Source of the DNA: Cetorhinus maximus
Lineage: Eukaryota
DNA: 64,000 nucleotides
NCBI RefSeq assembly: GCF_964194155.1
Contig: NC_135890.1
Location: forward strand, 97,154,001-97,218,000
Reading direction: 5' to 3'
Below, in pieces: positions 6,063 to 61,319 of this stretch. Under the pieces are notes generated by a model. The model saw only the letters and a list, made by a program, of their open reading frames with translations, searched no databases and had not been told where the DNA came from. The first letter of the stretch is position 1, and every line of letters begins with the position of its first letter. The position numbers and the translations under genes are program-made.

Positions 6063-6659
6063 TAACCAATTTTTAAAATAATTTTGTACTTTGCCCCTGC
6101 TATGATAAGGACGTTACTATATTATCTCAATTTGGAATAAATCTACCACATCTTTTTTAACTTGTATTTAATAGCTTATTCTAAACTGTTAATATGCCTG
6201 TATTTGTGTTTGTGCCTTGGGCAGACTATAAAGAAAACTGTGAGCCCATTGATGCTGTATTTGTCTGGTGGATTACCTTGGCCTTTGGGCTGACGGTCAA
6301 AAAAAAATAGTTTTTATTAAAAAAATAGTTAGGTCCCTCGTGTTTGATATGCTTCTGTGTCCTTATGGTAGAACTGACTTCACAACATTATAAAGACTTA
6401 CTTTATTTATAAACTGTACAAGAATAATGTGCACTTAAAAGTTTTTCCATTATTAGCACTTATATAAGTGGAAGATCCTGTTTGGAAGGAAGGCAGAACG
6501 GATCCTGCTCTTAAATTTAAATGTATGTATATATCACCACCGCCCCCCACCCCCATGTAATTATGCACTCTTGCTTTGTCTTGGGAAATATCCTTCATTC
6601 CTTTCTCCTGACCTAAATGGCAGATTTAACGTGTGAATCATACAATATTATTTTTCCTG

Positions 6660-9107: not shown

Positions 9108-10195
9108 ACAGAATCACAGAACTGTTAGGGTGCAGAAGGAGGCCATTCAGTCCACCGTGTCTGGACTGGCTCTCCAAATGAGCATATGACTTAGTGTCAT
9201 TCTCCTGCTTTTTCCCCATACCCTTGCACATTGTTTCCATTCAAGTAATAATCTATTGCCCTCTTGAATGCCTCAAATGAACCTGCCTCCGCCACACTTC
9301 CAGGCAGTGCATTCCAGACTCGAACCACTCGCTGTGTGCAAAGGTTTTTTCTCACATCACATTTGCTTCTTTTGCAAATCACTTTAAATTTGTGCCCTCT
9401 CATTCTCGACCCCTTGACGAGCGGGAACAGTTTCTCCCTATCTACTCTATCCAGCCCCCTCGTGATTTTGAACACCTCTATCAAATCTCCTCTTAGCCTT
9501 CTCTCCAAGGAGAAGAGTCCCAACTTCTTCAACCTATCTCAATAACTCAAGTTTCTCATCCCTGGAACCATTCTTGTAAACCTCTTCTGCACTCTCTCTA
9601 ATGTGATCACATCCTTCTTATAGTGTGGCGCCCAGAACTGTACACAATACTCCAGCTGAGGTCTAACTAGTACAAAAGCCCAGCATAACCTTCCTGCTCC
9701 TGTACTCTTATGCCCCTATTAATAAAGCCCAGGATACTGTATGCTTTATTAACTGCTCTCTCCACCTGTCCTGCCACCTTCAATGATCTATGCACATATA
9801 CACTCAGGTCTTTCTGCTCCTGCACATCTTTAAGAATTGTACCCCTTATTTTATATTGTCTCTCCATGTCTTTCCTACCAAAATGAATCAACTCTCACTT
9901 CTCTGCATTGAACTTTATCTGCCACCCATCTGCCCATTCCACCAACCTGCCCATGTCCTTCTGAAGTTCTACACTGTCCTCCTCTCAGTTTACAATGCTT
10001 CCAAGTTTTGTATCATCCGCAAACTTTGAAATTGCCCCCTGCACACCAAGATCAAGATCATTAATATATATCAGGAAAAGCATGGATCCCAATACCGACC
10101 CCTGGGGAACTCCGCTACAAACCTTCCTCCAACCTGAAAAATATCCATTGACCTTTACCCTCTATTTCCTATTACTCAGCCAATTTTATATTCAG
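9108..10195 (-). mobile_element. 5'-truncated vertebrate-type CR1 LINE
   Basis: [17 protein letters not shown] and LFSLERRLRGDLIEVFKI in broken frames; TTCTGTGATTCTG tail. Confidence 0.88.
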
Positions 10196-13887: not shown

Positions 13888-14148
13888 ACAAAAACAGAAA
13901 ATGCTGGAAAAACTCGGCAGGTTTGGCAGCATCTGTGGAGAGAGAAACAGGGTTAACGTTTCAAGTCCGTATGACCCTTCTTCAGAGCTCTGAAGAAGGG
14001 TCATACGGACCCGAAGAAGGGTCATACGGACCCGAAACGTTAACTCTGCTTCTCGCTCCACAGATGCTGCCAAACCTGCTGAGTTTTTCCAGCATTTTCT
14101 GTTTTTGTTCCAGATTTTCCAGCATCTGCAGTATTTTGCTTTTATCTT
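13888..14148. mobile_element. Penelope-like palindromic (inverted pLTR) insertion with hammerhead-like cores
   Basis: ~100-bp arms centred on GAGCTC (13985-13990); CTGAAGA...GAAAC on both strands; 15-bp TSD AGTATGAGC(A/T)ATGGG at 13873-13887 and 14149-14163. Confidence 0.75.
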
Positions 14149-22873: not shown

Positions 22874-23020
<147 letters not shown>

Positions 23021-23384
23021 TAGCACATTGAAGGCATGCTTACTTTTCAAAGGATTAAGCAGTTTTATTGTATAATGTGACCCCTTGTCTGTAAATTCAA
23101 CTGCTGACAGTAAATTTCCTTTGCTAACAGTTTTTTGTATCAATTTGTTTTCGCCTTTTTATGAAGTTAATTGTCGATGTTCCAGTGAGCAGGGTTTAAT
23201 ACTTAACAGAGCTGTGGGAATAAAAACCCAGTAGTACCAGCACCTGAAATGAATCCCTACCAGTTCCTAATGTTGTGTGTGATGTTCCAGATGGATGTTG
23301 GATCCGTATGCTGAACTGTTATTGTATTTTGCAAACTAAATACCCTGTACTCTGCCAAGACTCAGAACCAACTGAGCATATTTC

Positions 23385-24660
23385 ATAGAATCATATAATG
23401 ATTACAGCACAGATGGAGACCATTCAGTCCATCATGCCCATGCTGACTCTCTGCAAGAGCAGTTTAGCTAGTTCCACTCCCCATCCTTTTCCCCACAGCC
23501 CAGCACATGGCTTTCCCTCAGGTGCTTGGCTCATTCCCTTTTAAAAAGCAACAATTGAATCTATCTCCAATACTTTTTCAGGCAGTGTATTCCAGATTAT
23601 AACTACTCGTTGCATTTTTTTTTTAAAAAAAGGTTTTCCTTAGGTTCTTATGCCAATCATTTTAAGTCTGTTATCTCTGGTTCTCGACCCCTCTGTCAAT
23701 GAGAGCAGTTAGACTCTATCTAGTCAGTGTAGACCCCTCATGATTTTGAACTCCTCTATCATATCTCCCCTCAACCTTTTCTCTATGGAGAACAACCCCA
23801 GCTTCTCCAGTCAATCCATGCCATTGAAGTCCTTCATCTCTGGAGTCATTCTCTTAATTACTTTTCTGCAACCCCTCTAAACGATGACATAAGAAATGGG
23901 AGCCAGTAGTAGGCCATTTGGCCCCTCAAACCTGCTCTGCCGTTCAGTAAGATTGTGGCCTTAAATCCACTTGGCTCCGCTATGTAGATCAAAAATCTTC
24001 ACATCCTTCCTAAAATGTGCTCAGAATTTGGACACTGCTTCAGTTGAGGCCAAACTATTGTTTTATAAAGGTTCATCATAACTTCCTTTCTTTTGTTCTC
24101 TATGCCTCTGTTAATAAAGCCCAGGATATTGTATGCATTATTATTAACACCACCTCTGCATGTCCTGCTACCTTCAATGATTGTGCATGTGCACCTCCAG
24201 GTCTGTCTGTTCCTGTCCCTTTTATTCCATGGGCTTCAACATTGCTGACAAGCCTATCATGTGACACTTTACCAAAAGCTCTTTGACAGTCCATATACAT
24301 CAAATTAACTGCTTTGCCCTCATCAACCCTCTCTGTTACCTCATTAAAAAACTTAAGTTAAATAGGATTTGCCTTTAACAAAGCCATGCTGGCTTTCCTT
24401 AATTAATCTACATTTCTCCAATTTCATTTCTAAAAGCTTTACCACCAATGAAGTTAAACTGACTTGCCTGTAGTTGCTGGCTTATCCTTGCACCTCTTTA
24501 GATAAAGGTTTAACAGTTGTGATTCTCAAGTCCTCTGGAAACACCCCCTTTCCTGTGGCCATTGCCTCTGCAATTTTTACCTTCCCTCAGCTTTCGCTGA
24601 TGCTTCCAATCCCGTCCTGGTGACTTATCAACTTTCAAGTACAGCTAACCTTTTCAGATC
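23385..24660 (-). mobile_element. Degenerate CR1 fragments, with a nested CR1 3' tip near 23888-23990
   Basis: YMDCQRAFGKVSHDRL (ORF 24100-24303); catagaatcata tail. Confidence 0.75.
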
Positions 24661-25738
24661 AACCAGGTTATGCTCAGTGAGCAGTCGTCAAGCTCCACTT
24701 CTGAATCTTTAGCCTTTTTAATAAATAAAAAATGGAAGTTTGTTTCGACTGGGATTTTTTTTAACTCTCTCTCTTGCAACAATGTTGGAGAGCACAAGGC
24801 TTTTTCAACCCCCCCCGGCCCCCCCAATTTCTTGAATCGTAGAACACAGCATAGTCATTCAAGTATTGGGTTCAATTTGATTATATGCTAGATGCTTTTT
24901 TTGCCATTAGAGTTTTATTTTGTAGGAAGCCCAAAACATGTGATGCAAGTAGCTAATGATTACGCTGTATGCACCTCCTTGTTTTAGGATCAAAAGTTTA
25001 AAGGAAATGTTAATGGTGTATCTTATACTCTTTTTCTCCTTAAACATATGTTTAATAGCCTGGAACACTCGAACCTAAGAGCTGAGCTTCCTCCAGATCA
25101 GCTGGGATAATTGATGTATTTTTTTCCTGCAATGCTTACTTGAAATTGAAATGTACAGAAGCTGCAGAATGTTTGGACCTGCAGGTGGAGTAGAAGGGGT
25201 CACATGACTGTTAAAGTTGGAATTTCAAAATTTAGAGCTTTAAGAAAGACATTTTATAGCTGAGGGCATGTGTTACAGTTTTGCCAATCTGCTCTTCATT
25301 TAAAGTCATTTGATTCCAATTTACTGATCGTTTAACTATTTTAGCACTAAATTTTGATTTTATTGAATTTATATTGCCTCATTCAAATCAATTTGAATTC
25401 TTCAACGCAAAATGATAGAATTATGAGTAGATTGTCAGTGATTGTGGCAAGAATAATATTAGTTCAGCGGTGCTGCTCCCATAATGTGTCATTTAATATG
25501 TAAACTGGACAGAGTCTGTTCAAGAATTATTCAAACTTTTCACAAAAAACCCAGCTACATTATGAACAGAAAATAGCCTAGTTGAACAGAGGGATATATG
25601 GCCTGTTAAGCTATGAGGTTTATTTACATTGGTTATGGAAGAAATTTGATATTTTACAGTCTTATACTTAATTGTATGCTTAAGTCAAGACAGCCTCTTG
25701 CAAAAGGTTTCTTTCATCAGGATGATCATGTTAAGTAA

Positions 25739-25891
<153 letters not shown>

Positions 25892-27021
25892 TAGTAAAGT
25901 TAACTTCAGAATAAGCTACGCCTTCAGGCTGACACAATCCGATTAGAACCCTCATCTCCATTTCAATTATGTATATTTTTAAAGCCAGTTTCACCCCACA
26001 ATTATCAAATCAATGGTTAGAATGAAGTTCTCTCATTAGATGGCTAGTGACATTTTATTCCCAGTGCAATGTAATTTTGAATAGAACTTTAACTACCCTC
26101 AACTTCAGATATACTTTTAAAAGACTTGGACAGATCAAATTTGTTTGAAATTCCCTAATAGTATTTTTGACCCCTTCCCTGCCTTGATAGATAGAAATCA
26201 TTGGCACACAGTAGTTCCAATACTGTTGCACTCAATGTTGCCATTTAAACGTACAAAGTGAAAACCACTCAGTAGTAAAGAGGGTAGCTCTTAATTTCTT
26301 GGCATTAGTCCCCATTGTCTTGGCTCAGGGACTTTACTCTGTAGGATTGACCTGCTGCCATAATCTTCTGGACAGTATTCAAATCCAATTGAATATTAAC
26401 ATTTTTAATATTTTGACATTTTTGTTGCATGTATAGTACTGAGATTTGTGTAAGTGCCACTTTTAGAAGGGAGAAGGGGAATGAAAGTTTGGTTTTCTTT
26501 TCAATTACTAACTCTACAACTGAAAAACTTAAAAATTGCTTTCTTAAGCTGTCCTTATAGTATCGCCAGCGACTAATGCATAGGTCTTGCCTAGCCAGTG
26601 GCAACACCAAAATGAAACTGTTGGATTTAGCAACTGGAGAAACCTTTTAATTTTTTGAACAGAGGAGTTTTCCCATTTGCAGCCCTTTTGTTTTATTAAT
26701 TTTGCCAAAGGAAATACTAATTTATGATCCCACTGATTCCTTGCTGATGGATAATACAAATTTTGTTCCTGGTTTTTGATATGGTGGTGTGTTATGTTAT
26801 AACTGTGTGGATTGGGTACAGGTTTGAACCTTCACTTGATTTTGATCTGAGTTTGTTTGCTTTCTTAGTGGACGCCAGTTGAGTGTGAAATGAATGTCCC
26901 TGTCTTTATGCAATATTATACACACAGATTTGTTCAATGTTTTCTATTAAGAGTATAACAGATCTTAAGTAGGTGAAGCCAATAGCATTTTCTTCCTTTA
27001 CAGTAACAGACTGTACATAAT

Positions 27022-27503
27022 GGGCTGGAGTTGCAGTGGGAACCATAGCGGCCGGGCTGACTTAATCATGGGACAAGCCCTGCAGCAGTGNNNNNNNNNN
27101 NNNNNNNNNNNNNNNNNNNNNNNNNNNNNNNNNNNNNNNNNNNNNNNNNNNNNNNNNNNNNNNNNNNNNNNNNNNNNNNNNNNNNNNNNNNNNNNNNNNN
27201 NNNNNNNNNNNNNNNNNNNNNNNNNNNNGATTAAGTCATAGGATGGAAGGGACTGACATGGAATTCCCTGCAGGATGTCAGTTAGGCTCATTGATGAGCC
27301 TCCCATAACTTACTGGCGGCTCAGGGATTAAGTGGAAGTCGTATGGGTCCCTGCGCCCCGGAAGGTCCCACAGCAAAACCTGTGGGATTTGCTAGCAGCC
27401 TTCTGCAGTTGTCAGTGTCGGTGGGGAGTTCTATCAGGCACTCTGTGCCCGTTCAAGGGACCTGGCATGGAGCAGGGGTGTGGCTGCTGAAAGCCCCAGC
27501 CCC
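27022..27503. mobile_element. MITE-like element in intron 7, spanning an assembly gap
   Basis: Ends GGGCTGG / CCAGCCC; same insertion point as the MITE in the retrocopy. Confidence 0.5.
27091..27228. other. Assembly gap (138 N)
   Basis: Run of N. Confidence 0.99.
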
Positions 27504-27908
27504 CTTAAGGCAACATAAAGCTGCAACATTTATAACATTGTTACCATTTATTCCTGGGATTGTTGGCCTTTCTGTGCTTTCCTGCTCACTGGTGACAGAT
27601 CATTCAGTCTACACAGAACTCTACAAGCTGGAAGACTAACGTCTCCATGTCCCCGGGTAAAATCCAAATCTGAGACTGTGTTTTAAGTTTAACCGTAGCT
27701 GTCCAACATTTGCCATACAAAATCAGGCAGACTAAAGGAGAGGCAGAGACAAGTCCATCTGTTTGAGCTTTTAATTGTCGTGCATATTCGCCTTCCTAGC
27801 CTTTTAAATAGTACCTTTACACAATTCTAACTACTAAGTAATTTTATGGTCACATGATGCCTAGCAGTATCAGTCCTTCTGCTCTGAATTCTAAACAGTT
27901 GATACACT

Positions 27909-28665
27909 AGAAATGTGAAGTGATTCATTTTGGTAAGAAGAACATGAGAGACGATATAAAATTCAGGGTCCAACTCTGAAGGGGGTTCAGGAGCAGAAGA
28001 TCCTGGGTGTATATGTGCATAAATCATTGAAGGTGGTAGGGCAGATTGAGAGAGTGGCTAATAAAGCATACAGTATCTCGGGGTTTATTAATAGGACGCT
28101 AGACTACAAGAGCAAGGAGGTTATGTTGAACTTGTATAAGGCACTAGTTCAGCCTCAGCTGGAGCATTGGGTTCAGTTCCAGGCACTGCACTTTAGGAAA
28201 GATGTGAAGGCACTGGTGGGAGCACAGAAAAAAATCATGAGAATGGTTCCAGGGAGCAGGAACTTCGGTTATGAAGATAGATTGGAGAAGTTAGGACTCT
28301 CTTCCTGGGATGAGAGAAGATTTGTTAGAGGTATTCCAAATCATGGACAGAGTAGATGGGGAGAAACTGTTCCCAGTTGTGAAAGGATTGCAAATGAGAG
28401 GGCATGGATTTAAGGTAATTTGCCAAAAGAAGCAAAAGCAACATGAGGAAAAACTTTTTCATGGAGCATGCCTGAGTGTGGTGGAGGCAGGATCAATTGA
28501 GGCATTCAAAAGGAAATTAGACTGTTATCTGAAAAGGAAGAATGTGGAGGGTTATGGGGCGAAGGTGGGGGGAATGGCACTAGGTGAATTGCTCGTTCGG
28601 AGAGCTGGTGCAGACGCGATGGGCCGAATAAGCTCCTCCTGTGGTGTAACAGTTCTATGATTCTG
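27909..28665 (+). mobile_element. 5'-truncated CR1 LINE in intron 7, sense to the gene
   Basis: ORFs 28015-28413 (YKSKEVMLNLYKALVQPQLE) and 28310-28660; TTCTATGATTCT tail. Confidence 0.88.
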
Positions 28666-30012
28666 CAGAGGGTTATTTTGTTGAGCTGCCTGTTCCTGAG
28701 GAAGGCTTTATCTTAATGCTCAGACTCTCATCAGTCCAAACTTGTTGTCTTAGTAGGCCACTTGAGCCACTTTAAAAAAAAAAGGACTGGCTTTTGTTCT
28801 GGATTAGATTCAAAGGCTGGCCTCTGTTTGACCACTTTGCACATTTTCACTTCTCCAGTAACAGAACTGTAGTCCCAGCTTTTTGTTTTGCTGGTTATAC
28901 CACCTGATTTGGTCCTGTAAACATGGAGATCTGCCCCATGGAGGGTGGTCCTGGTAGTCCAATCTAAAAGGCGACCAGTATAAAAATGGTTTGAGCTGTT
29001 TACCCTAGAGCACTGCGGACCACATAAAAGTGATCTTTTGGTTCGCCCCTTTATTTTCCCTCAGGTTGTCAATTTTGTCTGTTCAAAAGCTATTGCTGCT
29101 GACCTCTTAAGTTCAAATGAAATTTGTGCCATTAAGAATATATCCCCAAGCTAAATTACAGATTTCAATTAAAAATTAACTTTGTAAAAAATCTCCTGGC
29201 GAAATTTTAAAGCTGCCTTTGATTTTTGTAGGGTTGCTTAAAACCTTTTGTTTCTGGCTATTTGTATCACACTGGGTTTGAATGTTTCAAGTTTTTAGAT
29301 CCTCCAGTGTGGAAAGTTTATACTCGGCTTCCGCATTGATTTAAGATTTATCCATCAATAAATGGGAGCAGACCTTTCCAAACTGCCAGACCTGCCAAGC
29401 TAAAATAGCCCAGTAGGGGGAAAAATATCAAAGCTTGTCGGAGAATGAATTACCAGGGTTTTGTAGGTCAGGTGGTCTGGGCTTAGTGAGACTGCATTTT
29501 TGATTTTATTTAATATTTTTCTGCTTTGCCTCTTTGATCAAGTAAGTGACAGCCACGACCCAAGGACATTAGATAAAGGGTGAGGGAGAGTCATGAAAAA
29601 TCATTTTAATAGGGCCAACATTCCTTCAGGTCCTCCATTGATCTCCTCGCTTGATTTGAATGAATAACTTTAGGTACTTTATTAATTTTTGAGAGAAATT
29701 ATTGATGCTTTCAGTTATTCTCTATGAATGAACATGGTGAATTGGTATTGTATACACAATCAAATTGCTGGGGACACCTACCTGTGCTTGGTAAATGGTA
29801 GAGAAAAGAGAAAATTCTGAAAACTTGAAACGCGCATCAACAAATCACAGAGTACAAATAAAAAGTAAAACTGTTCTGATGCAGCGTTTTACCTGAAAGA
29901 GAGAGATGAAATTCTCTTTTAATTAAGCTGCTGTGTGTTTTCAGTACTTTGGTTGATCTGTTGTGCGATTAACCGTGTAGGTAAAAGTTGCTGACTCCTT
30001 ATTTTGAGATGA

Positions 30013-30561
<549 letters not shown>

Positions 30562-41288: not shown

Positions 41289-44200
41289 AAAGAACAAAGA
41301 AAAGTACAGCACAGGAACAGGCCCTTCGGCCCTCCAAGCCTGCACTGATCATATTGCCCATCAACTAAAACATTTTGCACTTCCGGGGTCTGTATCCCTC
41401 TATTCCCATCCTATTCACGTATTTGTCAAGCTGCCTCTTAAACACCACTATCGTACCTGCTTCCACCGCCTCCTCTGGCAGCGAATTCCAGACACTTACT
41501 ACCCTCTGCGTAAAAAACTTGCCCCGCACATTTCCTCTATAGTTTTCTCCTCTCATCTTAAATATATGTCCCCTAGTAATTGACTCTTCCACCCTGGGAA
41601 AAAGCTTCTGACTATCTACTCTGTCCATGCCACTCATAATTTTGTAAACTTCTATCAATTCGCCCTTCAATCTCTGTCGCTCTAGTGAGAACAATCTGAG
41701 TTTCTCCAACCTCTCCTCATAGCTAATAACCTCCAGACCAGGCAGCATCCTGGTAAACCTCCTCTGCACCCTCTCCAACGCCTCCATATCCTTCTGGTAA
41801 TGTGGCGACCAGAATTGCACGCAATATTCCAAGTGTGGCCTAACCAAGGTTCTATACAGCTGCAGCATGATTTCCCAGCTTTTATACTCAATACCCCTGC
41901 CAATGAAGGCAAGCATGCCATATGTCTTCCTGACTACCTTATCCACCTGTGTTGCCACTTTCAGTGACCTGTGGACCTGTACACCCAGATCCCTCTGCCC
42001 TTCAATGCACTTAAGGGTTCTGCCATTTACTGTATAATTCCTGCCTGTATTAGACCTTCCAAAATGCATTACCTTGCATTTGTCCGAATTAAACTCCATC
42101 TGCTATTTCTCCGCCCAAGTCTCCAACCAATCTATATCCCGTTGTATCCTTTGACAATCCTCTTCACTATCTGCAACTCCTCCAACCTTAGTGTCGTCTG
42201 CAAACTTACTAATTAGCCCAGTTACATTTTCCTCCAAATCATTTATGTATACTACAAACAGCAAAGGTCCCAGCACTGATCCCTGCGGAACTCCACTAGT
42301 CACAGCTCTCCATTCAGAAAAGCACCCTTCCACTGCTACCCTCTGTCTTCTATGACCAAGCCAATTCTGTATCCATCTTGCCAGCTCACCTCTGATCCCG
42401 TGCAACTTTACCTTCTGTTCCAGTCTGCCTTGAGGGACCTTGTCAAAGGTCTTACTGAAATCCATGTATATAACATCCACTGCCCTTCCATTGTCGATCA
42501 TCTTTGTCACTTCCTCGAAAAATTCGATCAAGTTAGTGAGATACGACCTCCCCTTCACAAAACCATGCTGCCTCTCACTAATACGCCCATTTGCTTCCAA
42601 ATGGTAGTAAACCCTGTCACGAAGAATCTTCTCCAATAATAACCCTACCACTGACGTAAGGCTCACCGGCCTGTAATTTCCTGGATTATCCCTGCTACCC
42701 TTCTTAAACAATCGAACAACATTGGCCATTCTCCAGTCCTCTGGGACCTCACCTGTAGCCAGTGAGGATACAAAGATTTCTGTCAAGGCCCCAGCAATCT
42801 CCTCCCTTGCCTCCCTCAGTACTCTGGGGTAGATCCCATCTAGCCCTGGGGACTTATCCACCTTAATGTTCTTCAAGACGCCTAGCACCTCTTTTTTGAT
42901 CTCAACATGATCCAGGCTATCTATACACTCTTCCCTAGACAAATCGACTGCTAAGTCCTTCTCTTTGGTGAATACTGATGAGAAGTATTCATTTAGTATC
43001 TCTCCCATTTCTTCTGGCTCCACACACAGATTCCCACCTCTGTCCCTGAATGGGCCTACCCTTTCCCTGGCTACCCTCTTGCTTTTTACATATGTATTAA
43101 AGGCCTTGAGATTTTCCTTAATCCTGGTTGCCAGTGACTTTTCATGACCCCTTTTAGCCCTCCTGACTCCTTGCTTAAGTTTCTTCCTACTTTCTTTATA
43201 TTCTCCACGGGCTTCATCTGTTCCCAGCCTTCTAGCCCTTACGAATGCTTCCCTTTTCTTTTTGACTAATCTCACAATATCCTTCATTATCCAAGGTTCC
43301 TGAAACTTGCCATGCTTATCCTTCATCCTAGCAGGAACATGCCGGTCCTGAATTCTTATCAACTGACGTTTGAAAGCCCCCCACATGTCAGTTGTTGATT
43401 TGCCCTCAAACATCCGCCTCCAGTCTAGATTCCTCAGATCCTGCCTAATATTGTTATAATTAGCCTTCCCCCAATTAAGCACCTTAACCCGAGGACTCCT
43501 GTTATCCTTATCCACCAGTACCTTGAAACTTACTGAATTATGGTCACTTTTCCCAAAATGCTCCCCTACTGAAACTTCGACCACCTGGCTGGGTTCATTC
43601 CCTAATACCAGGTCCAGTATTGCCCCTTCCCTAGTTGGACTATCTACGTATTGTCTCAGGAAGCCCTCCTGCATGCACCTTACAAATTCTGCACCATCCA
43701 AACCCCTAGCACTAAGTGATTCCCAGTCAATATAGGGAAAGTTAAAATCACCCACCACAACAACCCTATTGCTTTTACATCTTTCCAAAATCTGCCTACA
43801 TAACTGTTCTTCAATCTCCCGCCGGCAATTAGGAGGCCTATAGTAAACTCCCAACATTGTGACTGCACCCTTCCTATTCCAGAGCTCTACCCATATTGCC
43901 TCGCTGCATGAGCCCACCGAGGTGTCCTCCTGTCGTACAGCTGTGATATTCCCCTTAACCAGCGGTACAACTCCCCCACCTCTTCTACATCCCTCTCTAT
44001 CCTGCCTGAAACATCTAAATCCTGGAATGTTTATCTGCCAATCCTGTCCATCCTTCAACCAAATCTCTGTAATAGCAATAACATCATGGTCCCAAGTACT
44101 AATCCAAGCTCTAAGCTCATCTGCCTTGCCTGTTATACTTCTCGCATTGAAACAAATGCATTTCAGACCCCCAGTCCCACTGTGTTCAGTAATTTCTCAC

Positions 44201-45510: not shown

Positions 45511-47170
45511 TGGTCTGTGTATGGTGAACATGTCACAGCAAGGGTGCTGCAGTTGGCCTCGGTGCCATGAGATTAGCGAAGGGAAATTTGGCTAAAATCC
45601 CCATTCCTGATCTCTAAGCAGTGATTCCTGATTTTTAGATGTTGGGAGAAGGCAACATTGGGCTCAATTCTGAAGCCCACTTGGTAAAATAACAAGCACT
45701 CGCAATCTAGATTCAAATCTTCAAAAGAAAATTTTTAGGGTGAATTACTTGTTGCATTTCAAGTAATTGTTCTTTTAATGGTATTTCATTATGCTACTTT
45801 TCCATGTTAAAGCCTATCAATTATTTTCATACTTTAGAATTATTTGTCGAGCGCAGTAAATGCCTGTTTTAGAAATTATTTTCTCTGTTCATAAAATCTT
45901 CAGTTGCTATTAGAGGGTTGTGGAAGTTGTAACTGTTGCAACCTGGTAGTGTTTAATTGTGATTGAAATATCAAGTTACTGATGAAAAAGCTGACACCAA
46001 AATTAAAGTACATGAAAAATAGTGCAGCTGGTCACTAAAACAATATCTTGTACCAAATGCTGAAAAATGTAATATATTGCTGCATTAGCTTCCTAGAACA
46101 TTAGTTTTGGGACACTGGTCACAGAAATAACTCCTTACTCAGGCACTAAGGTGTAAATTAGGCATTCCATCGAAAGGAGAGAGAACACTTGAGCACAAGT
46201 TTGACATGCCCATCCCTGTGCCTCCCACACCTTGATTATCGACTGCTTAACTTCTGGCTGCTAGTCTCCTGAGGTTGATTCTAAACTTGCTGCCATGGTG
46301 TTAAACTAGTGTTATAGATTGGTTATCCATTATAAAAACCATCCAATTTTAATTTATATTGTTTTTCAGTATTATCCAGTCTAACAGCAGTAAAATTAAA
46401 TCTGCCTGATGTTTCTTAACATCCTGTTGTATATATCTAATACAAATGGTGAAGAAAGAAACTTGAGAGTTACCTCTGTCCAAATTACTTTCTTGTCCTT
46501 GCCCACCTCCTTTTGTCCTTCTATAAGTTACATGTGCGTTTCCGAAGAGAAGGCGTAAATAATAATACTGGGCAAGTTGGACATTTGAGAGGAAGAGATT
46601 TTTGTAACCATGACACCTATCTTAAAGGGCCAAAGCCACTTCACGCCAAAAGATATTCCTCTAGCGCATATACCCTTCAGAGACACACTAATTACCACTG
46701 ATCAATTTCCAGCCACAATGAATAACATTTGGTCAGGGGCACACTTACAATTGATTGACCTTTGACTGCTGCTGACTTGTGCTTTTTCAAAGAATGTTGT
46801 AATAAAACTAGGTTAAAATTAAGCGATCAGATTTATTATACATTGGTATAAAATGCTTCACTTGTTAGAGAATTGTTTACATTGTCATAAAGAATCTACG
46901 GCCTAACTGATATTAAGGCAATAATGTGTGATTTTTTTTTTCTCCTATATCCTGTTTGCTCAGATATTTAGCCCCATTTTGGCCTTTGAAGTACTTAGAC
47001 CTGATTGGAAGCTGCCTTCAAGTAATCAACCATATATGTCTTTTGGGTGCTTCCTTGAAATTTTCAAACAGTGAACATTGTTTAGTATTGCAAAAAATAA
47101 TTTTCCTGAATTTGACCATTTTCATATACCAAGTATGGTTTTCATCTGGTATGTTTTTTTTTATCTTTAG

Positions 47171-47392
<222 letters not shown>

Positions 47393-48099: not shown

Positions 48100-49545
48100 A
48101 GCGAAGCAGCCCTTGTCAAATCACAAATACCATCCTATACGGCTGATGGTGGCAAACTATCCTTCCTACCCTTCTCTGCCTGTCTGTAACTTTAGACATG
48201 ATTGACCACACTATCCTCCACTGACAGCTTTCTACTGTTGCCCAGCTGGATGGGGCTGCACTCACCTGGTTCCATCCTTATTTACCAGTCACAGCCAGAG
48301 AATCACCTTAAATTACTTCTCTTCCCCTCTTCCCCCAATAATTAACATCTCATTGGGGACCCACTTACTTACAATTGATTGACCTTTGACTGCTGCTGAC
48401 TTGTGCTTTTTAAAAAAAAATGTTGTTATAAACCTAGGTTAAAATTCAGTGATCAGGTTTATTATGCATTGGTATAAAACCCTTCACTTGTTAGAGAATT
48501 GTTTATGTTGTCATAAAGAGTCTCTGGTCTAACTGAAATGAAGGCAATAATGCATGATTTATTTTGATATCCTGGCCGCTCAGATATTTTGCCCCATTTT
48601 GGCCTTTGGAACACCATTACCTCTGGTGTTCCCCAAGGTTTTCCCCCCTCATTATTCTTTATCTACCTGTTGCCTCTCAGCAACATCATCTGAAAATGCT
48701 GTCAGTTTTCTATATGTATGCTGATGATACACAGTTAACTTCCACCCTCAACCCCCTTTACTGTCTCTAATTTGTCCAACATCCGGCACTGGATGAGCAA
48801 AATTTTTCTGCAACTAAATATTGGGAAGACTGAAGCCATTATCTTTGATTGATGCCACAAACTCCACTCCCTAGCCACCGTTCCATTCTCCTCCCAGGCA
48901 ACTGTCTGCAGCTGAACCAGACTGTCCACAGCCTTGGTGTTATATGTGACCCTGACTTGGGCTTCCATGCCCGTGCCAATCTTAAGACCATCTGCTTCCA
49001 CCTCCATAACTTCATTAAACTCCACCCCTGCGTCAGCTCATTTGCTACTGAAACTCTTCTTGTCTTTGTTACCTCTAGACTTTACTATTCCAACACATAC
49101 CAAGTTGGCCTCCTATCTTCCGCCATCTCCAATCTTGGGGTCGTGCAAAACTTTTGCTACCCATGTCCTAACTCGCACTGAGTTCCGGTTGCTTGTCACC
49201 CCTGCATTGACCTACCTTGACTCTTGGTTAAAGAATTAAAAGCCTTATCTTTGTTTTCAGATCCCTCTATGACCTCTCCTTCCTATCTTTGTAACTTCCT
49301 CTAGCCCTTCAACCCTCAGATATCTGCAAACCTCCACTTCTGGCCTCAGCATCCCGATTTTAATCACTGCACCCAAGCTCTGGAATTCTTTCCCTAAACC
49401 TCGTCGCATTGCTATTTCTCTTTCTTCCTTTAGGACACTCCTTGAAACCTGACTCTTTGACCAAGCTTTTGGTCATCTGTTCTACTAAATCCTAATGTAA
49501 CTTAGTGTCAAAATTTGTTTGATAACATGCTGTGAAGTGCCTTGT
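48100..49545 (+). mobile_element. Degenerate L2 LINE (RT region to 3' end), interrupted by a 270-bp local duplication
   Basis: TSGVPQG, YADDTQL, LQLNIGKTEAI and VTSRLYYSN remnants. Confidence 0.8.
48340..48610 (+). repeat. Direct copy of intron 14 sequence 46720-46990
   Basis: Long identical runs, e.g. acttacaattgattgacctttgactgctgctgacttgtgcttttt and cagatattt.gccccattttggcctttg. Confidence 0.9.
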
Positions 49546-54630: not shown

Positions 54631-55290
54631 CAGAACCTTACTTCAAAATAAGTTGTCCCAGTAAGACAAGATGTTCATTTAAAATGCACCTTAGAAAAAA
54701 ATCATTGCTCAAAGGATAGTAGATAATTTTAAATGTTGCCTGGGTAAGGTTGTGGGACTAAAAGATATTGGAGCCATTAGAATATGCATTTGGAATACAA
54801 GACTGAGAGAGTTGGAGCACCAGAGTGACTAGCTGGACCATAAATGGCTTTTCTTGACCTATCACCTAGTTTCTCTTTGCTTATTCAGTCCAGATTCACT
54901 TTTGCCTTTTTCTTAGTAACGAAGCACTCTGTTGATGCCTTAATAGATTTTATAATTTATTGATTCATGACCATTGCATCTCACTTGATCGTTACAGTGG
55001 TTTCACTGTTGCATTTAACACATGTCCCTCTTGTAGTGCCTTCTTCCAAAACTTAATTTTCATCATGACACGGGTAAGGAGCAGCTTGGATGTGATGCTC
55101 CCCAATGTCCAAATGCATTCTCATTTGAAGCAGGAGACATTGGAAAGAGGTCAAGAATGGAGCCCTAGCTGATTTAACTGCCCCTGTCCCTGCCACCACC
55201 CCCATTCCAGCAGAGATCAGCTAATTCAATTTGTACCAGGCTGCAAATTGAGGACCAGTAAGCTCAGCTGTGATTTTGGATAAACTTAAT

Positions 55291-55945
55291 GGGCAGAATT
55301 TTGCCTTTGACGGGTGGACGGGCCCCACAGGCTCGGCAGTGGGCGGGCAGCCAATCGCCGCCACCAAAACGGGCCCTGCCGCCATTTTGAGTGGGCGGGC
55401 CACCTGACAGGAAGCGCTATGCGCTTCCTGTGGTGGGCGGGGTGGGGGGGTAGGAATTCTCCAACTGTCAAAGTGCGCTGTTTCACGCATACACACAAAA
55501 GAGCGCACATCTCCCTGAGACTAAGTGCTGTCTCAGTGAGAGCGCTGAAAGTTTTATAAACCTAAAAAAATAGAAAAATAAATAAATTATTCACATGTCC
55601 CCCTCATATGACAATGTCACACGAGATGGGACATGTTGATAAATATCACAAAGCTTATTAAAGTTTTTTAAAACAGACATGAAACCTCATCCCGCCAGTG
55701 GATGAGGTTTCATGTTTTTTCAGAAGCCTTAAGGTTGACGGGCAGGGCCTTTAATTGGCGTAATTATCCTGTCAATGGCCTCAATTGGCCATTGACAGGT
55801 CAGCGGGTGGACAGCTGATTTTGCTGTCCGCCCGCCTTCCTGAATATTTAAATGGGGCGGGATGACGTCAGGGGTTCCCCCCGGCGTCATTTTCACGACG
55901 GCGAGAGGGCTCCGCCCCCAACTCACTGACGGGAAAATTCTGGCC
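55291..55945. mobile_element. Harbinger/PIF-like MITE (655 bp)
   Basis: TIR GGGCAGAATTTT / AAAATTCTGGCC; 3-bp TSD AAT at 55288-55290 and 55946-55948; CpG-rich; internal hairpins. Confidence 0.8.
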
Positions 55946-57459
55946 AATGTGTCATTGGGGAAACATTATTTCACACAACTTTGCGTTGAACTGCATCTGT
56001 CAACCATTGTGTTAATGATCTAAATCTTTCTGAATCCAATTGCGTTGTTGCCTGCTTTTTTAATGAGTCCTGTTTCAAGCCATTAATAAAATAATTCCAG
56101 TGCTCCCTGATGCCTGGCGATTAAAATTCATAACTTCTTTGAAGCTTAAAAATATCTTTAAACTTGTTTTGCTATATTTATAATCAGCCGTATATTATAA
56201 AATAATAACATATGCTACCCAGAACCACAGAGAATCACAGAATTGTTGTACTGCGCAGAAGGAAGCCATTCAGTCTATCGTGTCTACACCAGCTCTCCAA
56301 AGTGAGCTATTCACCTAGTGCCATTCCCCTGCCTTCCCCCTGTAACCCTCCACATTCTTTCTTTACAGATAACAGTCCAATTCCCTTTTGAATGCTTTGA
56401 TTAAACCAGCCTCCACCATACTTTTGGGCATTCCAGACCCCAACCACTCGCTGCATGAAAAGGTTTTTCCTTGGGACATTTTTTGCTGCTTTTGCCAATT
56501 GATTTAAATCTGTGCCCTCTCATTCTCGATCCTTTCATGAACGGCAACAATTTCTCCCTATCTACTTCGTCAGGACCCCTCATGATTTTGAACGCCTCTG
56601 TCAAATCTTTTCTTGACTTTCTTCAAGGAAAACAGTCTCAAGTCCCTCATCCCTGGAACCATTCTTGTGAATTTTTACTGCAATCTTGTCAAGGCCTTCA
56701 CATCTCTCCTAAAATATAGTGCCCAGAACTGTACGCAATACTGCAGCTGAGGCTGAACTAGTGCCTTATACAAGTTCAACATTACCTCCTTGCTCTTGTA
56801 GCCTAGCACCCTAATTAATAAAGCCCAAGATACTGTATGCCTCAACCTGCCGTGCCACCTTAAATAATTTATGCACGTGTACACCCAGGATCCTCTGCTC
56901 CTGAGCCCCTTTCAGAGTTAGACCCTGAATTTTAGATCGTGTCTCACGTTCTTACCAAAATAAATCACTTCACATTTCTAGTGTATCAACTGTTTAGAAT
57001 TCAGAGCAGAAGGGCTGATACTGCTAGGCATCATGTGACCATAAAATTACACAGTAGTTAAGAGTTGTTTAAAGGTACTATTTGAAAGGCTAGGTAAGGT
57101 AAATATGCATGACAATTAAAAGCTCCAAACAGATGGACCCATCTCTGCCTCCTCCTTAGTCTGCCTGATTTTGTATGGCAAATGTTGGACAGCTACGGTT
57201 AAACTCAAAACACAGTCTCAGAGTTTTGGATTTTACCCGTAGATATGAAGACTTTAGTCATCCAGCTTGTAGAGTTCTGTGTAGACTGAATGATCTGTCA
57301 CCAAAATACACTGCCAGTGAGCAGGAAAGCACTGAAAGACCAACAATCCAAGGAATTAATGGTAACAATGTTATAAGTTGCAAGAGATTAAACAATTGTA
57401 AAGGCCACTGAAATAGATTCGAAAGGAACACATTTTAAGGCTTTTCTGTTGCACACATT

Positions 57460-57948
57460 GGCTGGAATTTTGTCAAGCCAACAGGGGTCTCGTCCACTGG
57501 TCAGAGAGCCCTTCAGGCACAATCGGCTGTTGCTGGGCCTTTCCAGCGATTGGGGGCCTTGGCGGCAGAAGACCCACCTGCTGAAAGCTGCCGACTTGTC
57601 ATCGCTACCAGCGCCAGCAGGAGCGGTGGCTCCTGGTGGTACTGCATCCACCCGATGTACAGGATTGTGGAGGCATCCAGGCCACGGGAGTGAAGGCTGG
57701 ATGGGGGTTTTGGGGTTGGCGGGTCAGGGGGGCTGGTGATTAGAGGCAAGCACAGGGGGTGGCTTTCAGTGGCCACCCCCCGAGCCTGATGTCAAGTCTC
57801 TTGGATAACGAGAGCACCACACCCCACACCAGGGTAGGGTTGGAGGGAAGACTCCTGTCACTGGGAGACTGATTCGGGGCTTTTCTCTCAACTAAACCAG
57901 TTTGGCCACCATGACTCCCACCACGAGGCACTGCATAAAATCCAGCTC
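57460..57948. mobile_element. Harbinger-like MITE within the retrocopy
   Basis: TIR GGCTGGAATTTT / AAAATCCAGCTC; TSD ATT at 57457-57459 and 57949-57951. Confidence 0.7.
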
Positions 57949-58751
57949 ATTATGTACAGTCTGTTACTGTAAAGGAAGAAAATGCTATTGGCTTCACCTA
58001 CTTAAAGTCTGTTATACTCTTAATAGAAAACATTGAACAAATCTGTGTGTATAATATTGCATAAAGACAGGGACATTCATTTCACACTCAACTGGCGTCC
58101 ACTAAGAAAGCAAACAAGCTCAGATCAAAATCAAGTGAAGGTTCAAACCTGTACCCAATCCACACAGTTATAACATAACACACCACCATATCAAAAACCA
58201 GGAACAAAATTTGTATTATCCATCAGCAAGGAATCAGTGGGATCATAAATTAGTATTTCCTTTGGCAAAATTAATAAAACAAAAGGGCTGCAAATGGGAA
58301 AACTCCTCTGTTCAAAAAATTAAAAGGTTTCTCAATTTGCCGAATCTGGCACTTTCATTTTGGTGTTGCCACTGGCTGAGCAAGACCTATGCATTAGCAG
58401 TTTGCGATACTATAAGAACAGCTTAAGGAAGCAATTTTAAGTTTTTCAGTTGTAGAGTTAGTAATTGAAAAGAAAACCAAACTTTCATTTTCCTTCTTCC
58501 TTCTCAAAGTGGCACTTACACAAATCTCAGTACTATACATGCAACAAAAATATCAAAATATTAAAGACATGTTAGCTTTCAATTGAATTTGAATACTGTC
58601 CAGAAGATTATGGCAGCAGGTCAATCCAACAGTGTAAAGTCCCTGAGCCAAGACAATGGGGACTAACGCCAAGAAATTAAGAGCTACCCTCTTTACTACT
58701 GAGTGGTTTTCGCTTTGTATGTGTAAATGGCAGCATTGAGTGCAACAGTAC

Positions 58752-59170
58752 CTTTTACCCATTCATGGGATGTGGGCGTCGCTGGCTAGGCCAGCATTTA
58801 TTGCCCATGTGAAATTGGTGGTGAGCTGCCTCCTTGAACCGCTGCAGTCCATGTGGTGTAGATGCATCCACAGTGCTCCAGAAGGGAGCTCCAGGATTTC
58901 GACCCAGAGAAAGTGAAGTCAGGATGGTGAGAGGGGGAACTTCCAAGTAGTAGTGGTCTCATGTGTCTGCTGCCCTTGTCCTTCTAGATGGTAACGGTTG
59001 TGGGTTTCGAAGGTACAGCCTAAGGAGACTTGCAGTGTTCCTGCAGTGCATCTTGTAAATGGTGTACACAGCTGCTACCGTGCATCGGTGGTGGAATGTT
59101 TGTGGATGGGGTGCCAATCAAGCGGGCTGCTTTGCCCTGGATGGTGTCAAGCTTGAGTGTTGTTGGCACT
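58752..59170 (-). mobile_element. Zenon-like LINE 3' fragment inserted into the retrocopy
   Basis: Matches 5130-5560; TSD AGTAC at 58747-58751 and 59171-59175; absent from the parental site near 26220. Confidence 0.85.
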
Positions 59171-59769
59171 AGTACTGGAACTATTGTATGCTGCCATTAA
59201 TTTCTGTCTACCGAGGCAGGGAAGGGGTCAAAATTACTATTAGGGAAGTTCAAATCTGATTTGTCCAAGTCTTGTAAAATTATATCTGAAGTTGAAGGTA
59301 GTTAAAGTTCCATTCGAAATGACATTGCACTGGGAAAAGAATATCGCTAGCTATCTAATGAGAGAATTTCATTCTAACCATTAATTTGATAATTGAGGGG
59401 TGAAAGTGGCTTTAAAAAATATACATTATTGAAATGGAAATGAGGGTTCTAATTCAGATGTCAGTTTGAAGGGGTAGCCTATTCTGAATTTAACTTTATT
59501 ATTCTAAGTTCAATCCAGGTGTAGTCAAGTTTTACAGAGAAAAAGCATGTTATTTTCATCCTGATTCGCAGCATGATGGTCAGGTACTGAGTCGATGTGT
59601 TTGATACAGATTTGCCTGTAAGAATAGATTTCCCTTTTATAATGATGAAGTGTTTCATCTTTTGAACAAAAATTGCACGCACATTTTGAATCATTTCGGA
59701 CAGCAGTCTCAATCCTTGACTTGACCCATCTTCTGCAGAAACACTCCTCCTTGCTTTTTCACTTCCAGC

Positions 59770-60060
59770 TTTGACCATTCCAGTTTTCTCTGGGTTGGCT
59801 TCCCATCCTCCAGTCTTTTTAAACTAGAACTCATCCAAAATTTTGTTGCCCATATCCTAACCCGCACCAAGCCCTGCTCACCCATCACACCTTCAGCTCA
59901 CTGATCCGCATTGCCTCCCAGTCCACCAACACCTCTGATTTAAAATCATTATCGTCTTGTTTTAATGCCTTCAGGGCCTTTCCCTCTCTTAACTCTGTAA
60001 CCTCCTATAGTCCTCCAAAAACCCTGCACTCTGAGAGCTCTGGCCTTTTGAGCATCCCCC
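59770..60060 (+). mobile_element. L2 fragment
   Basis: Similar to 49080-49350 (ctcatccaaaattttgttgcccatatcctaacccgcac). Confidence 0.6.
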
Positions 60061-61082
60061 GCCATTGACTTTTGTACCTTTTTGTTTCATTTTAATTTTA
60101 CCTCTCTTAATCCACAGAAGTCTTAACTTTTGATCTATTTATTTTTCCATTTTCTCTAAGTATATCTATTTTTCATTTTCATTGCTCATTTGAAAGTTTA
60201 CTGTTGCTGAGCAACCACTTTGTTCGTTTACTTTTCTACCAAGTTAATTTTAGCAGTGCTTTTTTGGCCATTTTAGTCCAGTGCCCTTATCTTGCACCCT
60301 TTTCTTTGTTTGTATTCACTTTGAACCTGATCATGTTATGGCCATCATTTCCAAACTATTCTACACTCTCATCAGTTACTTGCCGTGCTTCACTTCCCAG
60401 AACTAAATCAGACAATGCTTCTTTCTTTGGACTAGGAAGCAGGTATTCTAGGAAACAGCCCAGGCTGAATTCTGAGGAGGCATTCTGTACTTAGACTGAA
60501 ATAAATGTATTGTATGTGGTCAATTTTGGGAGTTAAAATGACTTTTTTTTTGTTCTCGTATATCACCTGACTTTTCCTTCTGATCTCACTGTTTGCATGC
60601 TAAGGAATTGTCATTTTCTTAACTGTTCCTCAACTCCATTCATATGGATTTCTCCATTCACATGGATTTTGCACCTAACACAAATCTCCAAAACATCCAT
60701 GTCCTCTAGTTACTAATTTTCCCACAGAATGATTTGAAGGCAAGTTTGCATAATGCTGATTATTTTGCTGGGCTAGATTCCAAATTACAGCATTTAAGAT
60801 GGATAGGGACTGGAACAAATATTCTATTCACCCTTAGAAAGCCCTTACCAACAGCGTGGAAATGCATTTCAGGTGCGGTCGTTCTGCTGAGTTATTCTCT
60901 ATTCCCAGTAAAGGTGAGTCTTCCAGGTGGTCATGTTTGCTGTCCTCCTTCAGGAATGTATCTTTTCTTGAATTGAGAGCAAGGACCTAACGATAACATT
61001 GGACATGGAATTGTAACAGAATTCAGGTACTCTACATATATAGAGTTATGTAGCACTAATAGAAAGTAGAACTGATCTCTGA

Positions 61083-61319
<237 letters not shown>

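Follow-up and report, generated by a model that had tools for sequence, protein, structure and literature searches.

A probable old retrocopy of partly spliced SERCA pre-mRNA that ends at an intronic CR1 tail and lies antisense in its own gene

The stretch of DNA analysed here, called the window, is 64 kb long and carries a calcium-pump (SERCA) gene that contains a second, inverted version of part of itself. On the forward strand, the source comprises the final 15 nt of an upstream exon (22968–22982; its translation ends in QSILTG and GTAATG comes next), an intron of 2787 bp (22983–25769), an exon of 86 nt (25770–25855) and a further intron that extends to about 30039. The initial ∼2 kb of this second intron (25856–27899) precede a 5′-truncated CR1-like LINE fragment in sense orientation (27900–28664), where homology to the copy ends. 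The SERCA exon at 30040–30504 was searched singly. The copy occupies the reverse strand from 59630 down to about 56231–56219, in a later intron of the same gene; SERCA exons are found on both sides of it, ending near 47390 and starting near 61100. A preliminary description of this DNA had placed an antisense copy in an intron of its own gene about 30 kb downstream, and this location is borne out here, at a distance of ∼34 kb from the source.

Read in the direction of the source, the copy is a chain of segments of very uneven identity (68% to 99%). The reverse complement of 59630–59536 consists of AATCTATTCTTACAG, then an exon copy of 80 nt, then GTAA and collinear intron. The first 15 nt (59616–59630, reverse strand) equal the source exon end at 15/15 positions. 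The decayed copy of the 86-nt exon (59536–59615, reverse strand) has a frameshifting 7-nt deletion and is 84–88% identical to its source; when aligned globally by force, the two give 67 matches, 13 mismatches and 7 gap columns, while another alignment puts identity at about 88%. Next on the same strand come a copy of the retained intron's first ∼373 nt (59164–59535; source 25856–26229; 86% identical) and a very high-copy short repeat of ∼400 bp (58760–59163, reverse strand), a later insertion lacking a counterpart in the source intron. Further copies of this repeat occur at 4178–7268, its word depth reaches 1e5–1e7 in all four sequencing runs, and many loose ends at 58760/58762 continue into a T-rich stretch. 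Beyond the repeat come a 93% identical copy of source 26221–27018 (57952–58750, reverse strand), a GC-rich stretch with only two collinear source remnants of 68% and 74% identity (57383–57951, reverse strand), and a 93% identical copy of source 27522–27899 (56989–57382, reverse strand) that runs collinearly into a CR1-like fragment (56219–56988, reverse strand). Between the two remnants of the GC-rich stretch, there is a length difference of ∼300 nt in one direction and of ∼350 nt in the other; the source counterpart contains a run of N. Later indels aside, source 25856–28664 is thus collinear with copy 59535–56231, and the intron after the 86-nt exon is retained. The earlier claim of a kept, collinear intron holds as far as source 28664; its picture of one block stands as regards collinearity, and has to accommodate the ∼400-bp interruption, the ∼570-bp stretch that aligns in remnants only and the spread of identity.

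The copy contains an exon–exon junction at 59616/59615. The intron of 2787 bp that separates the two exons in the source is precisely missing from the copy, with removal exactly at the junction, as in a partially processed retrocopy. The match to the exon end (15/15) and the poor match to the last 15 nt of the missing intron (25755–25769; 6/15, counted by eye), both reported previously, are reproduced. Perfect sites for the 15-mer occur at exactly two places in the 64-kb window, 22968–22982 and 59616–59630; an additional site with two mismatches lies at 23005–23019. With up to two mismatches allowed, the three matches in the window compare with 0.28 expected, and none of 100 shuffles reaches three. 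The probability of finding a given 15-mer at one fixed place by chance is ∼1e-9. On both counts a chance match is rejected.

Neither flank of the copy continues beyond either end of the source block. Comparison of the 5′ flank with the missing 2787-bp intron yields no homology (best E 0.31), and comparison of the flanks with the missing intron, the upstream exons and the source past 28664 yields no similarity (best E 0.038). These results agree with the preliminary description, which had the upstream intron of ∼2.8 kb exactly missing and the copy 5′-truncated in the upstream exon: the intron has left no trace in the copy or its flank, and beyond the 15 nt of the exon the sequence shows no similarity to the source.

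The other end of the copy coincides exactly with the tail of ATTCTRTG-type octamers that closes the CR1-like fragment of the source intron on its 3′ side. The tail of the source fragment reads GTTCTATG ATTCTG, and that of the copy finishes in the octamer-type repeats ATTCTGTG ATTCTCTGTG GTTCTGG; past this point, the next 16 nt match at 4/16 positions. Units of this type end all three aligned CR1 copies (the source, the copy and an unrelated one at 9110–9902), and their number differs between source and copy. The copy lacks poly(A), and its 3′ end carries a LINE-specific tail, as would be expected of a retrocopy made by a LINE enzyme. The 5′ truncation point of the CR1 fragment and the flank upstream of it are common to source and copy, with 95–98% identity across the boundary.

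Both ends bear on an explanation at the DNA level, in which an inverted duplication, for example by replication template switching, was followed by exact deletion of the intron through AG/G microhomology. Nearby inverted duplications are indeed typical of DNA-level rearrangement, and AGG at both intron borders (cAG/Gt and tAG/Ga) offers 3 nt of microhomology. Such a path needs three coincidences: one breakpoint would have to fall 15 nt short of a splice site, the deletion would have to be accurate to the base, and the other end would have to hit precisely on the 3′ tail of a LINE. It would also have had to leave no remnant of the intron in the copy or flank. Full collinearity between arbitrary endpoints, the mark of an inverted DNA duplication, is not what is found, with an intron lost toward the 5′ end and a LINE terminus as the 3′ end. 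We regard this explanation as highly improbable, in line with the earlier statement that simple DNA duplication is unfit. A variant, in which the duplication predates the intron and SERCA gained the 2787 bp afterwards, could appeal to the age of the event, given 26–32% divergence in unconverted parts. It still requires one end of the duplication to lie 15 nt ahead of the place where the intron was to be gained, and the other at the CR1 tail. Vertebrate SERCA paralogues probably have a common exon layout, in which case the intron would be far older than the copy. This variant is extremely improbable.

An origin of the junction in misassembly or in cDNA contamination of the scaffold deserves virtually no credence. 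Both junctions are covered by contigs from two runs of organism A, which show 0–1 differences and the same depth as the flanks (19–27): X1 record 8 and X2 record 32 span 59137/59164–59859 with 0 differences, and X1 record 1 spans 56000–56339. Nothing was found that favours an artefact, with the proviso that X1 and X2 represent one sample, which may be the assembly's own source. The related organism B (X19) also has the filled 3′ junction, bridged by record 17, and copy-specific sequence in record 24, which covers 59153–59382 at 97% and fits the copy, not the source that is 86% identical to it. Contamination is further at odds with the 12–30% divergence of the copy from its source. The 5′ junction is bridged in the organism A contigs but does not show up in organisms B and C, where depth at this place is 3.0 and 7.4, respectively, versus ∼20–35 elsewhere. 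Absence from raw reads of the junction between the exons numbered 6 and 7 in the preliminary description had been named in advance as a refutation, and contigs of two organism A runs contain this junction. None of the runs that hold this stretch is an RNA run.

The event is old, because the unconverted parts are only 68–74% identical, that is 26–32% diverged. These values reflect change along two lineages, whereas changes in the exon copy, 84–88% identical to a constrained exon, fall on one lineage, and the two ages are coherent. Since identity rises to 93–99% in patches, the inverted arms may have undergone gene conversion with each other. The most extreme patch, copy 58251–57952 against source 26719–27018, is 99% identical (297/300; P ∼3e-7 for three or fewer mismatches in 300) and is probably a gene-conversion tract. 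A structured RNA as the cause of this tract was discarded, as no Rfam family matched source 25000–29500 at E ≤ 1. Hypermutability of 57383–57951 was likewise rejected: organism C has the stretch at ∼92% (X16 record 11), and since it is stable there, two indels combined with old divergence fit better. Substitutions (60 G>A versus 46 A>G; 46 C>T versus 47 T>C) display no clear strand asymmetry, and an ADAR- or APOBEC-like editing signature of an RNA or cDNA stage was dropped.

The CR1 fragment of ∼760 bp is 5′-truncated and full of stops, without endonuclease and reverse transcriptase (RT) in one ORF, and consists of a C-terminal ORF2 remnant and the 3′ end. Its copying was therefore possible in trans only. 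The sister copy at 9110–9902 encodes a 113-aa C-terminal piece of ORF2 that matches bird proteins annotated as reverse transcriptase or RNA-directed DNA polymerase jockey-like (45–50% identity over 88% of the query, E 1e-13 to 1e-17), which we take to be CR1 proteins. With the same piece, Pfam returned no relevant family and the ESM Atlas nothing. PMC8665684 describes for CR1 both the ATTCTRTG octamer and a hairpin that the RT presumably recognizes. When the terminal ∼100 nt of the three CR1 copies are folded, the structures are no better than those of shuffled sequences (z 1.10, 0.08 and −0.60), and a stem is visible solely in the least decayed of them.

Identity between the CR1 fragments of source and copy is 88% in the 5′ part, 74% in the middle and 82% in the 3′ part, and part of the copy's CR1 may derive from another element. 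In such a case, the event would still be RNA-mediated, and the 3′ CR1 part would have come either from an active CR1 RNA under reverse transcription, the enzyme switching within CR1 homology to SERCA pre-mRNA, or from a CR1 resident at the site, where a break was repaired with pre-mRNA cDNA. Template switching is reportedly tied, in the title of a preprint (10.1101/081950), to the emergence of SINE retroposons in passerine birds. The middle of the fragment (source 28194–28511) speaks for a second element: source and copy are 73.9% identical there, a value no higher than their identities to the unrelated CR1 at 9110–9902 (75.4% and 76.6%), and site patterns are star-like, with 30 common to source and copy and 30 and 32 private to each. 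Stretches of 23 nt and 9 nt also occur in the copy and the unrelated CR1 and are missing from the source. These gaps can be later deletions in the source, however, and a single switch does not predict that source and copy are closer over the last ∼150 nt (81.6%) than either is to the unrelated copy (71–75%). As the non-CR1 remnants in 57383–57951 are equally low (68–74%), age and patchy gene conversion suffice without a second template. We consider a contribution of another element unlikely.

The locus is best read as the product of an old event in which pre-mRNA of SERCA itself gave rise to a partially processed retrocopy, a reading that we hold to be probable. Taken together, the spliced junction, the 5′ truncation and the end at a LINE tail speak for the reverse transcription of a pre-mRNA that had been spliced in part. 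This had been proposed in the preliminary description, and the junction, the kept intron, the CR1-tail end and the unrelated flanks all agree with it. What is new is the end of the copy at the CR1 tail, which gives a mechanism. The term splicing intermediate used earlier is loose, as the template would have been a partly spliced pre-mRNA and no lariat intermediate. The case for the RNA route is strong but circumstantial, because neither a target-site duplication nor an empty site was found; the flanks have at most a 3-nt GGG in common, and the search for a duplication recommended earlier thus came back negative. The lack of a duplication weakens the case for a retrocopy without excluding it.

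The sequence of events may have been as follows. Being in sense orientation within the intron that follows the 86-nt exon, the CR1 fragment would be transcribed within the pre-mRNA. Reverse transcriptases of the CR1 type recognize their own RNA by its 3′ end, which consists of a hairpin and octamer repeats. An enzyme from an active CR1, acting in trans, would have bound the CR1 tail in a SERCA pre-mRNA that had already lost the 2787-bp intron upstream and still kept the CR1-bearing one. Priming at nicked DNA in an intron farther downstream in SERCA would then have initiated target-primed reverse transcription. The cDNA would have extended across the CR1 fragment, ∼2 kb of preceding intron, the exon and its splice junction, with synthesis halting 15 nt into the upstream exon. 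The closeness of a nuclear, chromatin-bound template may be the reason for landing in the same gene. Later on, the short repeat was inserted, indels arose, and the two inverted arms probably converted each other in patches. Action of the CR1 machinery in trans on the intronic CR1 tail is the most likely source of the activity. CR1 is not known to start copying from a tail that lies deep inside a long pre-mRNA.

Three corollaries had been drawn earlier and fare differently. If insertions fell at random in a genome of at least 2.9 Gb (contig total as a proxy), one would land as near to the source as ∼34 kb with a probability of ∼2e-5. A half-spliced template is nuclear, and with this proximity it hints that the template never left the transcription site. 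Integration in the same gene at ∼34 kb is upheld; that it was cis-local we infer from a single case, in a scan that sees pairs within the window. As for splicing order, the first intron is gone and the second kept, as claimed, and removal of the 2787-bp intron before the next is weakly suggested by this one case: with priming inside the retained intron, only molecules still carrying it could be copied, and the record of order is a weak one. Germline expression of SERCA pre-mRNA, in turn, can be soundly inferred from a heritable copy common to at least two organisms.

Several known systems resemble this locus in part. Partially processed retrocopies number eight in human according to the GENCODE counts in PMC3491395, and semi-processed retrocopies are documented by Soares 1985, Baertsch 2008 and Zhang 2014, as cited in PMC5470649. 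Like them, the SERCA copy lost some introns and kept at least one, is 5′-truncated and was dead on arrival. Those retrocopies are of the L1/poly(A) type, stem from polyadenylated transcripts and are inserted elsewhere in the genome, whereas the SERCA copy ends in an intron at a CR1 tail, comprises one exon plus 15 nt and lies inside its parent gene. In 5′ transduction by non-LTR retrotransposons, known for L1 and, with spliced upstream host exons, for SVA, upstream host sequence is also carried along through the 3′ end of an intragenic element, as is a spliced junction. The elements in that process are active, often full-length, and end in poly(A); here, the carrier is a dead CR1-type fragment of 760 bp, and the product landed in the source gene.

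A closer parallel in the 3′ end is given by SINE/LINE pairs. Stringent 3′-end recognition and tail-mediated mobilization in trans are described in PMC3747384 and PMC5470649, and the former includes CR1-tailed SINEs of sharks and other vertebrates among the RNAs mobilized through the 3′ tail of a stringent LINE. As in these pairs, a non-autonomous RNA would have been copied via the 3′ end of a partner LINE, with a product ending in LINE tail repeats. Unlike Pol III-transcribed SINEs, the carrier is a Pol II pre-mRNA, its tail is internal, and the event is a one-off without a family. Genomes in which CR1 dominates among the LINEs have few retrogenes (Suh 2015, cited in PMC5470649 and PMC8665684), and the same rule would apply at SERCA: CR1 enzymes copy only RNAs that offer a CR1 3′ structure. 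The locus departs from the retrogene-poor picture in that a host transcript meets this requirement by means of an intronic CR1 fragment, and in that the retrocopy bears an intron. Word searches of open-access main text retrieved no report of a retrocopy inserted in its own parent gene or of a pre-mRNA copy primed at a CR1 tail.

As one old, dead copy, the SERCA retrocopy taken by itself amounts to a well-documented curiosity and establishes no new principle. A wider reading, which we put forward as speculative and rather doubtful, would be that nuclear LINE enzymes act on nascent, chromatin-tethered and half-spliced pre-mRNAs that have an intronic LINE tail, integrating cDNA at a nearby nick, and that the 3.4-kb inverted arm produced in this way pairs with the source intron in all pre-mRNAs made since, patches of it having stayed at 93–99% identity through gene conversion and perhaps also through selection for RNA pairing. 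If this were true, genes would now and then ‘retro-duplicate’ their own pieces locally. The inverted arm and the source intron bracket the exons from about 30.0 to 47.4 kb, and their pairing could then drive back-splicing into circular RNA, or RNA editing, of the SERCA gene. Genomes with stringent LINEs such as CR1 are thought to be poor in retrocopies, as host mRNAs are without the LINE 3′ signal. The SERCA locus would represent a way round this limit, in which an intronic LINE fragment lends its tail to a pre-mRNA and the product necessarily keeps an intron. Within one essential gene, the inverted pair would also provide a natural example of concerted evolution over a long time and a potential source of double-stranded RNA.

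A gene for a SERCA-type calcium ATPase lies on the plus strand of the window, with exons from ~22.9 kb to ~61.2 kb. Exon 30040-30504, used in a single-exon search, matches SERCA2 residues 211-365 (E 1.9e-94); the assignment by search comes from this one exon, the others being placed by six-frame motif scans. The upstream exon relevant here (‘exon 6’ of the preliminary description) stops at 22982, just before GTAATG. A 2787-bp intron (22983-25769), skipped in the copy, separates it from an 86-nt exon (25770-25855), after which a retained intron extends to about 30039. The copy itself lies on the minus strand within a later 13.7-kb intron, delimited by an exon end near 47390 and an exon start near 61100. 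Direct repeats of ~248 bp (46743-46988 and 48367-48608, 86% identity) are found on either side of the exon encoding TGDGVNDAP....

Minus-strand positions 59630-59616 read AATCTATTCTTACAG, the same as the end of the upstream exon (22968-22982), and are directly followed by an 80-nt version of the 86-nt exon, then by GTAAAA and intron sequence. The exon junction is as the preliminary description had stated, with 15/15 matches to the exon end, 6/15 (counted by eye) to the 3′-terminal 15 nt of the skipped intron, and the next exon directly abutting. In the 64-kb window, these are the two perfect occurrences of the 15-mer; with up to two mismatches, three matches are found versus 0.28 expected, a number reached in 0/100 shuffles. 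An echo with two mismatches (AACCTATTCTTATAG, 13/15) occurs at 23005-23019, 23 nt into the skipped intron, and could have arisen by a small duplication local to the 5′ splice site. Local alignment gives three collinear blocks with the copy on the minus strand: 59605-59166 with source 25787-26229 (85%), 58750-57868 with 26221-27089 (92%) and 57382-56231 with 27522-28664 (79%). On neither side of the copy (59631-61000 and 55000-56218) is there any likeness to the skipped intron, the upstream exons or the source past 28664 (best E 0.038). From these blocks and flanks, what was duplicated is thus exactly the terminal 15 nt of one exon, the exon after it and the initial 2.8 kb of the following intron. 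A target-site duplication is not seen, the two flanks having just GGG in common.

The final ~760 bp of source (27900-28664) and copy (56988-56219) are a CR1-like repeat, with more copies in the window at 9110-9902, 23387-24222 and 41291-42081. Translations reveal a decayed reading frame (e.g. ...LYKALVQPQLEHWVQF...). An intact 113-residue piece from the 9-kb copy is similar to bird proteins annotated as ‘reverse transcriptase’ or ‘RNA-directed DNA polymerase from mobile element jockey-like’ (45-50% identity, 88% of the query, E 1e-13 to 1e-17), which we take to be CR1 ORF2 fragments; 66 proteins among 83 candidates reach E ≤ 0.001, the majority unnamed. Two proteins labelled as Escherichia coli hypothetical proteins (P0015 and P0022) share 48-51% identity with the CR1-type ORF2 fragment (E about 1e-14 to 1e-15) and are probably animal DNA contamination in bacterial assemblies, since their contigs are very short (555 and 807 bp). 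In the source intron the fragment is in sense orientation and 5′-truncated, and its truncation point and upstream flank are common to source and copy (95-98% identity over the boundary). Homology between source and copy stops at the element end, where 4/16 of the following nucleotides match. ATTCTRTG-type units terminate all three aligned CR1-like copies, namely the source (GTTCTATG ATTCTG), the copy (ATTCTGTG ATTCTCTGTG GTTCTGG) and the third at 9 kb (GTTCTGTG ATTCTGTG). The usual CR1 microsatellite is 5′-ATTCTRTG-3′ and is presumed, together with an upstream hairpin, to be what the CR1 reverse transcriptase recognises (available text of PMC8665684). On folding, the decayed CR1-like copies gave a hairpin no better than shuffles.

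Three features coincide: the 5′ side has an exact splice junction, the copy is 5′-truncated 15 nt past this junction, and its 3′ end is at the terminus that a stringent-type LINE enzyme uses. Stringent LINEs copy any RNA bearing their 3′ end, and SINEs are mobilised in this way (available parts of PMC3747384 and PMC5470649), among them CR1-tailed ones in vertebrates such as sharks (PMC3747384). The simplest reading is that a CR1 enzyme acted on the intronic CR1 tail of a partly spliced SERCA pre-mRNA. The upstream 2787-bp intron would already have been spliced out and the CR1-bearing intron still held; the enzyme would have taken the CR1 tail as its start, and reverse transcription would have run back through intron, exon and splice junction. 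Re-priming on the tail repeat could account for a number of units unlike that of the source. A DNA duplication followed by loss of the intron finds AG/G microhomology at both borders of the skipped intron, but needs three coincidences, with the breakpoint falling 15 nt from a splice site, the intron being deleted to the exact base and the far end coinciding with a LINE terminus. In a variant, the middle part of the CR1 would derive from another template, by a switch from an active CR1 RNA or by repair of a resident CR1; source and copy are 73.9% identical there versus 75.4% and 76.6% to the unrelated 9-kb copy, and site patterns are star-like (30/30/32). Retroposition soon after the intronic CR1 insertion would give the same pattern, and a single template switch does not predict the last 150 nt, where source and copy are closer again (81.6% versus 71-75%). 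No strand-asymmetric substitution pattern was found between source and copy.

The first and second blocks of the copy are separated by a short repeat of ~400 bp (58760-59163) that the source is without, with other copies at 4178-4442, 5131-5568 and 6997-7268. Its word depth is 1e5-1e7 in every run compared (three organisms), and at loose contig ends many copies adjoin a plus-strand run rich in T. This repeat was inserted after the retrocopy formed. Copy 57383-57951 and source 27019-27521, a GC-rich stretch (55-56% GC), are alignable solely in two collinear remnants (68% and 74%), whose spacing differs by ~300 nt one way and ~350 nt the other and therefore points to two indels. The source side holds a 138-base N run, left unfilled in the comparison, with a short inverted repeat at its sides (gacttaatcatgg / gattaagtcat). 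Other inverted repeats are a 693-bp pair (3800-4485 / 6954-7646, 83%) and local near-palindromes at 13884-14112 (230 bp, 86%) and 55677-55799 (about 35-39 bp).

Identity along the pair is uneven. It amounts to 84-88% in the exon copy (67 matches and 13 mismatches in a forced global alignment), 86% in the first intron part (315 and 51), 93% over source 26230-26718 (455 and 33), 99% over 26719-27018 (297 and 3) and 93% over 27522-27899 (350 and 26), and then to 89% (246 and 30), 73% (212 and 77) and 82% (125 and 27) in the 5′, middle and 3′ parts of the CR1. Mismatches in the 99% tract (copy 57952-58251) are far under the pooled rate (P about 3e-7), the rest of the pair being at 68-93%, and these 300 bp have the look of a recent gene conversion. 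A search of the source side of the tract with Rfam gave no RNA family. Because the source exon is constrained, the 12-16% difference of the exon copy represents change of one lineage; doubled, it fits the 26-32% in the 57383-57951 remnants and the CR1 middle. Given this fit, and the 99% tract that stands out from it, we read the copying event as old and gene conversion between the inverted arms as later. Conversion seems to have been blocked near indels and at edges. At 12-16% change per site, retention of 15/15 at the junction has an unremarkable probability of 0.07-0.15.

Presence in sequenced samples was followed in assembled contigs compared with the window. In organism A, whose runs X1 and X2 come from a single sample, perhaps the one used for the assembly itself, the 5′ junction is spanned with 0 differences by X1 record 8 (59137-59859) and X2 record 32 (59164-59859), and the 3′ junction by X1 record 1 (56000-56339). 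X1 depth over the non-repeat parts of the block (19-47) is on par with the flanks (25-27), so the block is low-copy at ≥90% likeness. In both runs, a minority contig differs by T>G at position 57240 and by 2 nt missing at 57223 (depth 7.3 of 25.3 in X1, 56 of 140.5 in X2); it may represent a heterozygous allele or source sequence aligned to the copy. In organism B, where listed X19 pieces are roughly 3-5% different from the window, record 17 (56000-56373; 18 other letters, 10 gaps) spans the 3′ junction. Record 24 (59153-59382; 7 other letters, 3 gaps) is ~97% identical to the copy, the source there being at 86%; organism B therefore has the copy and, as this record begins within the repeat, probably also the later repeat insertion. 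Organism C is represented over copy-specific sequence by X16 record 11 (56983-57772, about 92%). Depth at the 5′ junction is 3.0 in B and 7.4 in C, with no spanning contig and dips that may be filter effects.

Collectively, the nature of the SERCA copy as a partially processed retrocopy is well supported. Such pseudogenes are a known kind, with eight in human (available text of PMC3491395) and further citations in that of PMC5470649, and it is established that stringent LINEs mobilise RNAs in trans through their tails (PMC3747384, likewise); the SERCA copy is a variant that ends at a CR1 tail, inside its parent gene. Open-access literature text, without supplements, yielded no CR1-tail-primed pre-mRNA copy and no retrocopy inside its own parent gene. 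Germline (or pre-germline) expression of the SERCA pre-mRNA, as first proposed, follows from the heritability of the copy. The proposed order of splicing, intron 6 before intron 7, is weakly recorded, because templates were limited to molecules still holding the CR1-bearing intron. The claim of local integration is suggestive: in a genome of at least 2.9 Gb (a proxy size), an insertion placed at random would fall within 35 kb up- or downstream with a probability of about 2e-5, though this is a single case from a scan limited to within-window pairs. As half-spliced RNA is nuclear, nearness of the template would be a reasonable cause of landing in the same gene. The inverted arms share one pre-mRNA and enclose the exons at about 30.0-47.4 kb, and it is tempting to speculate that they might affect back-splicing or editing.
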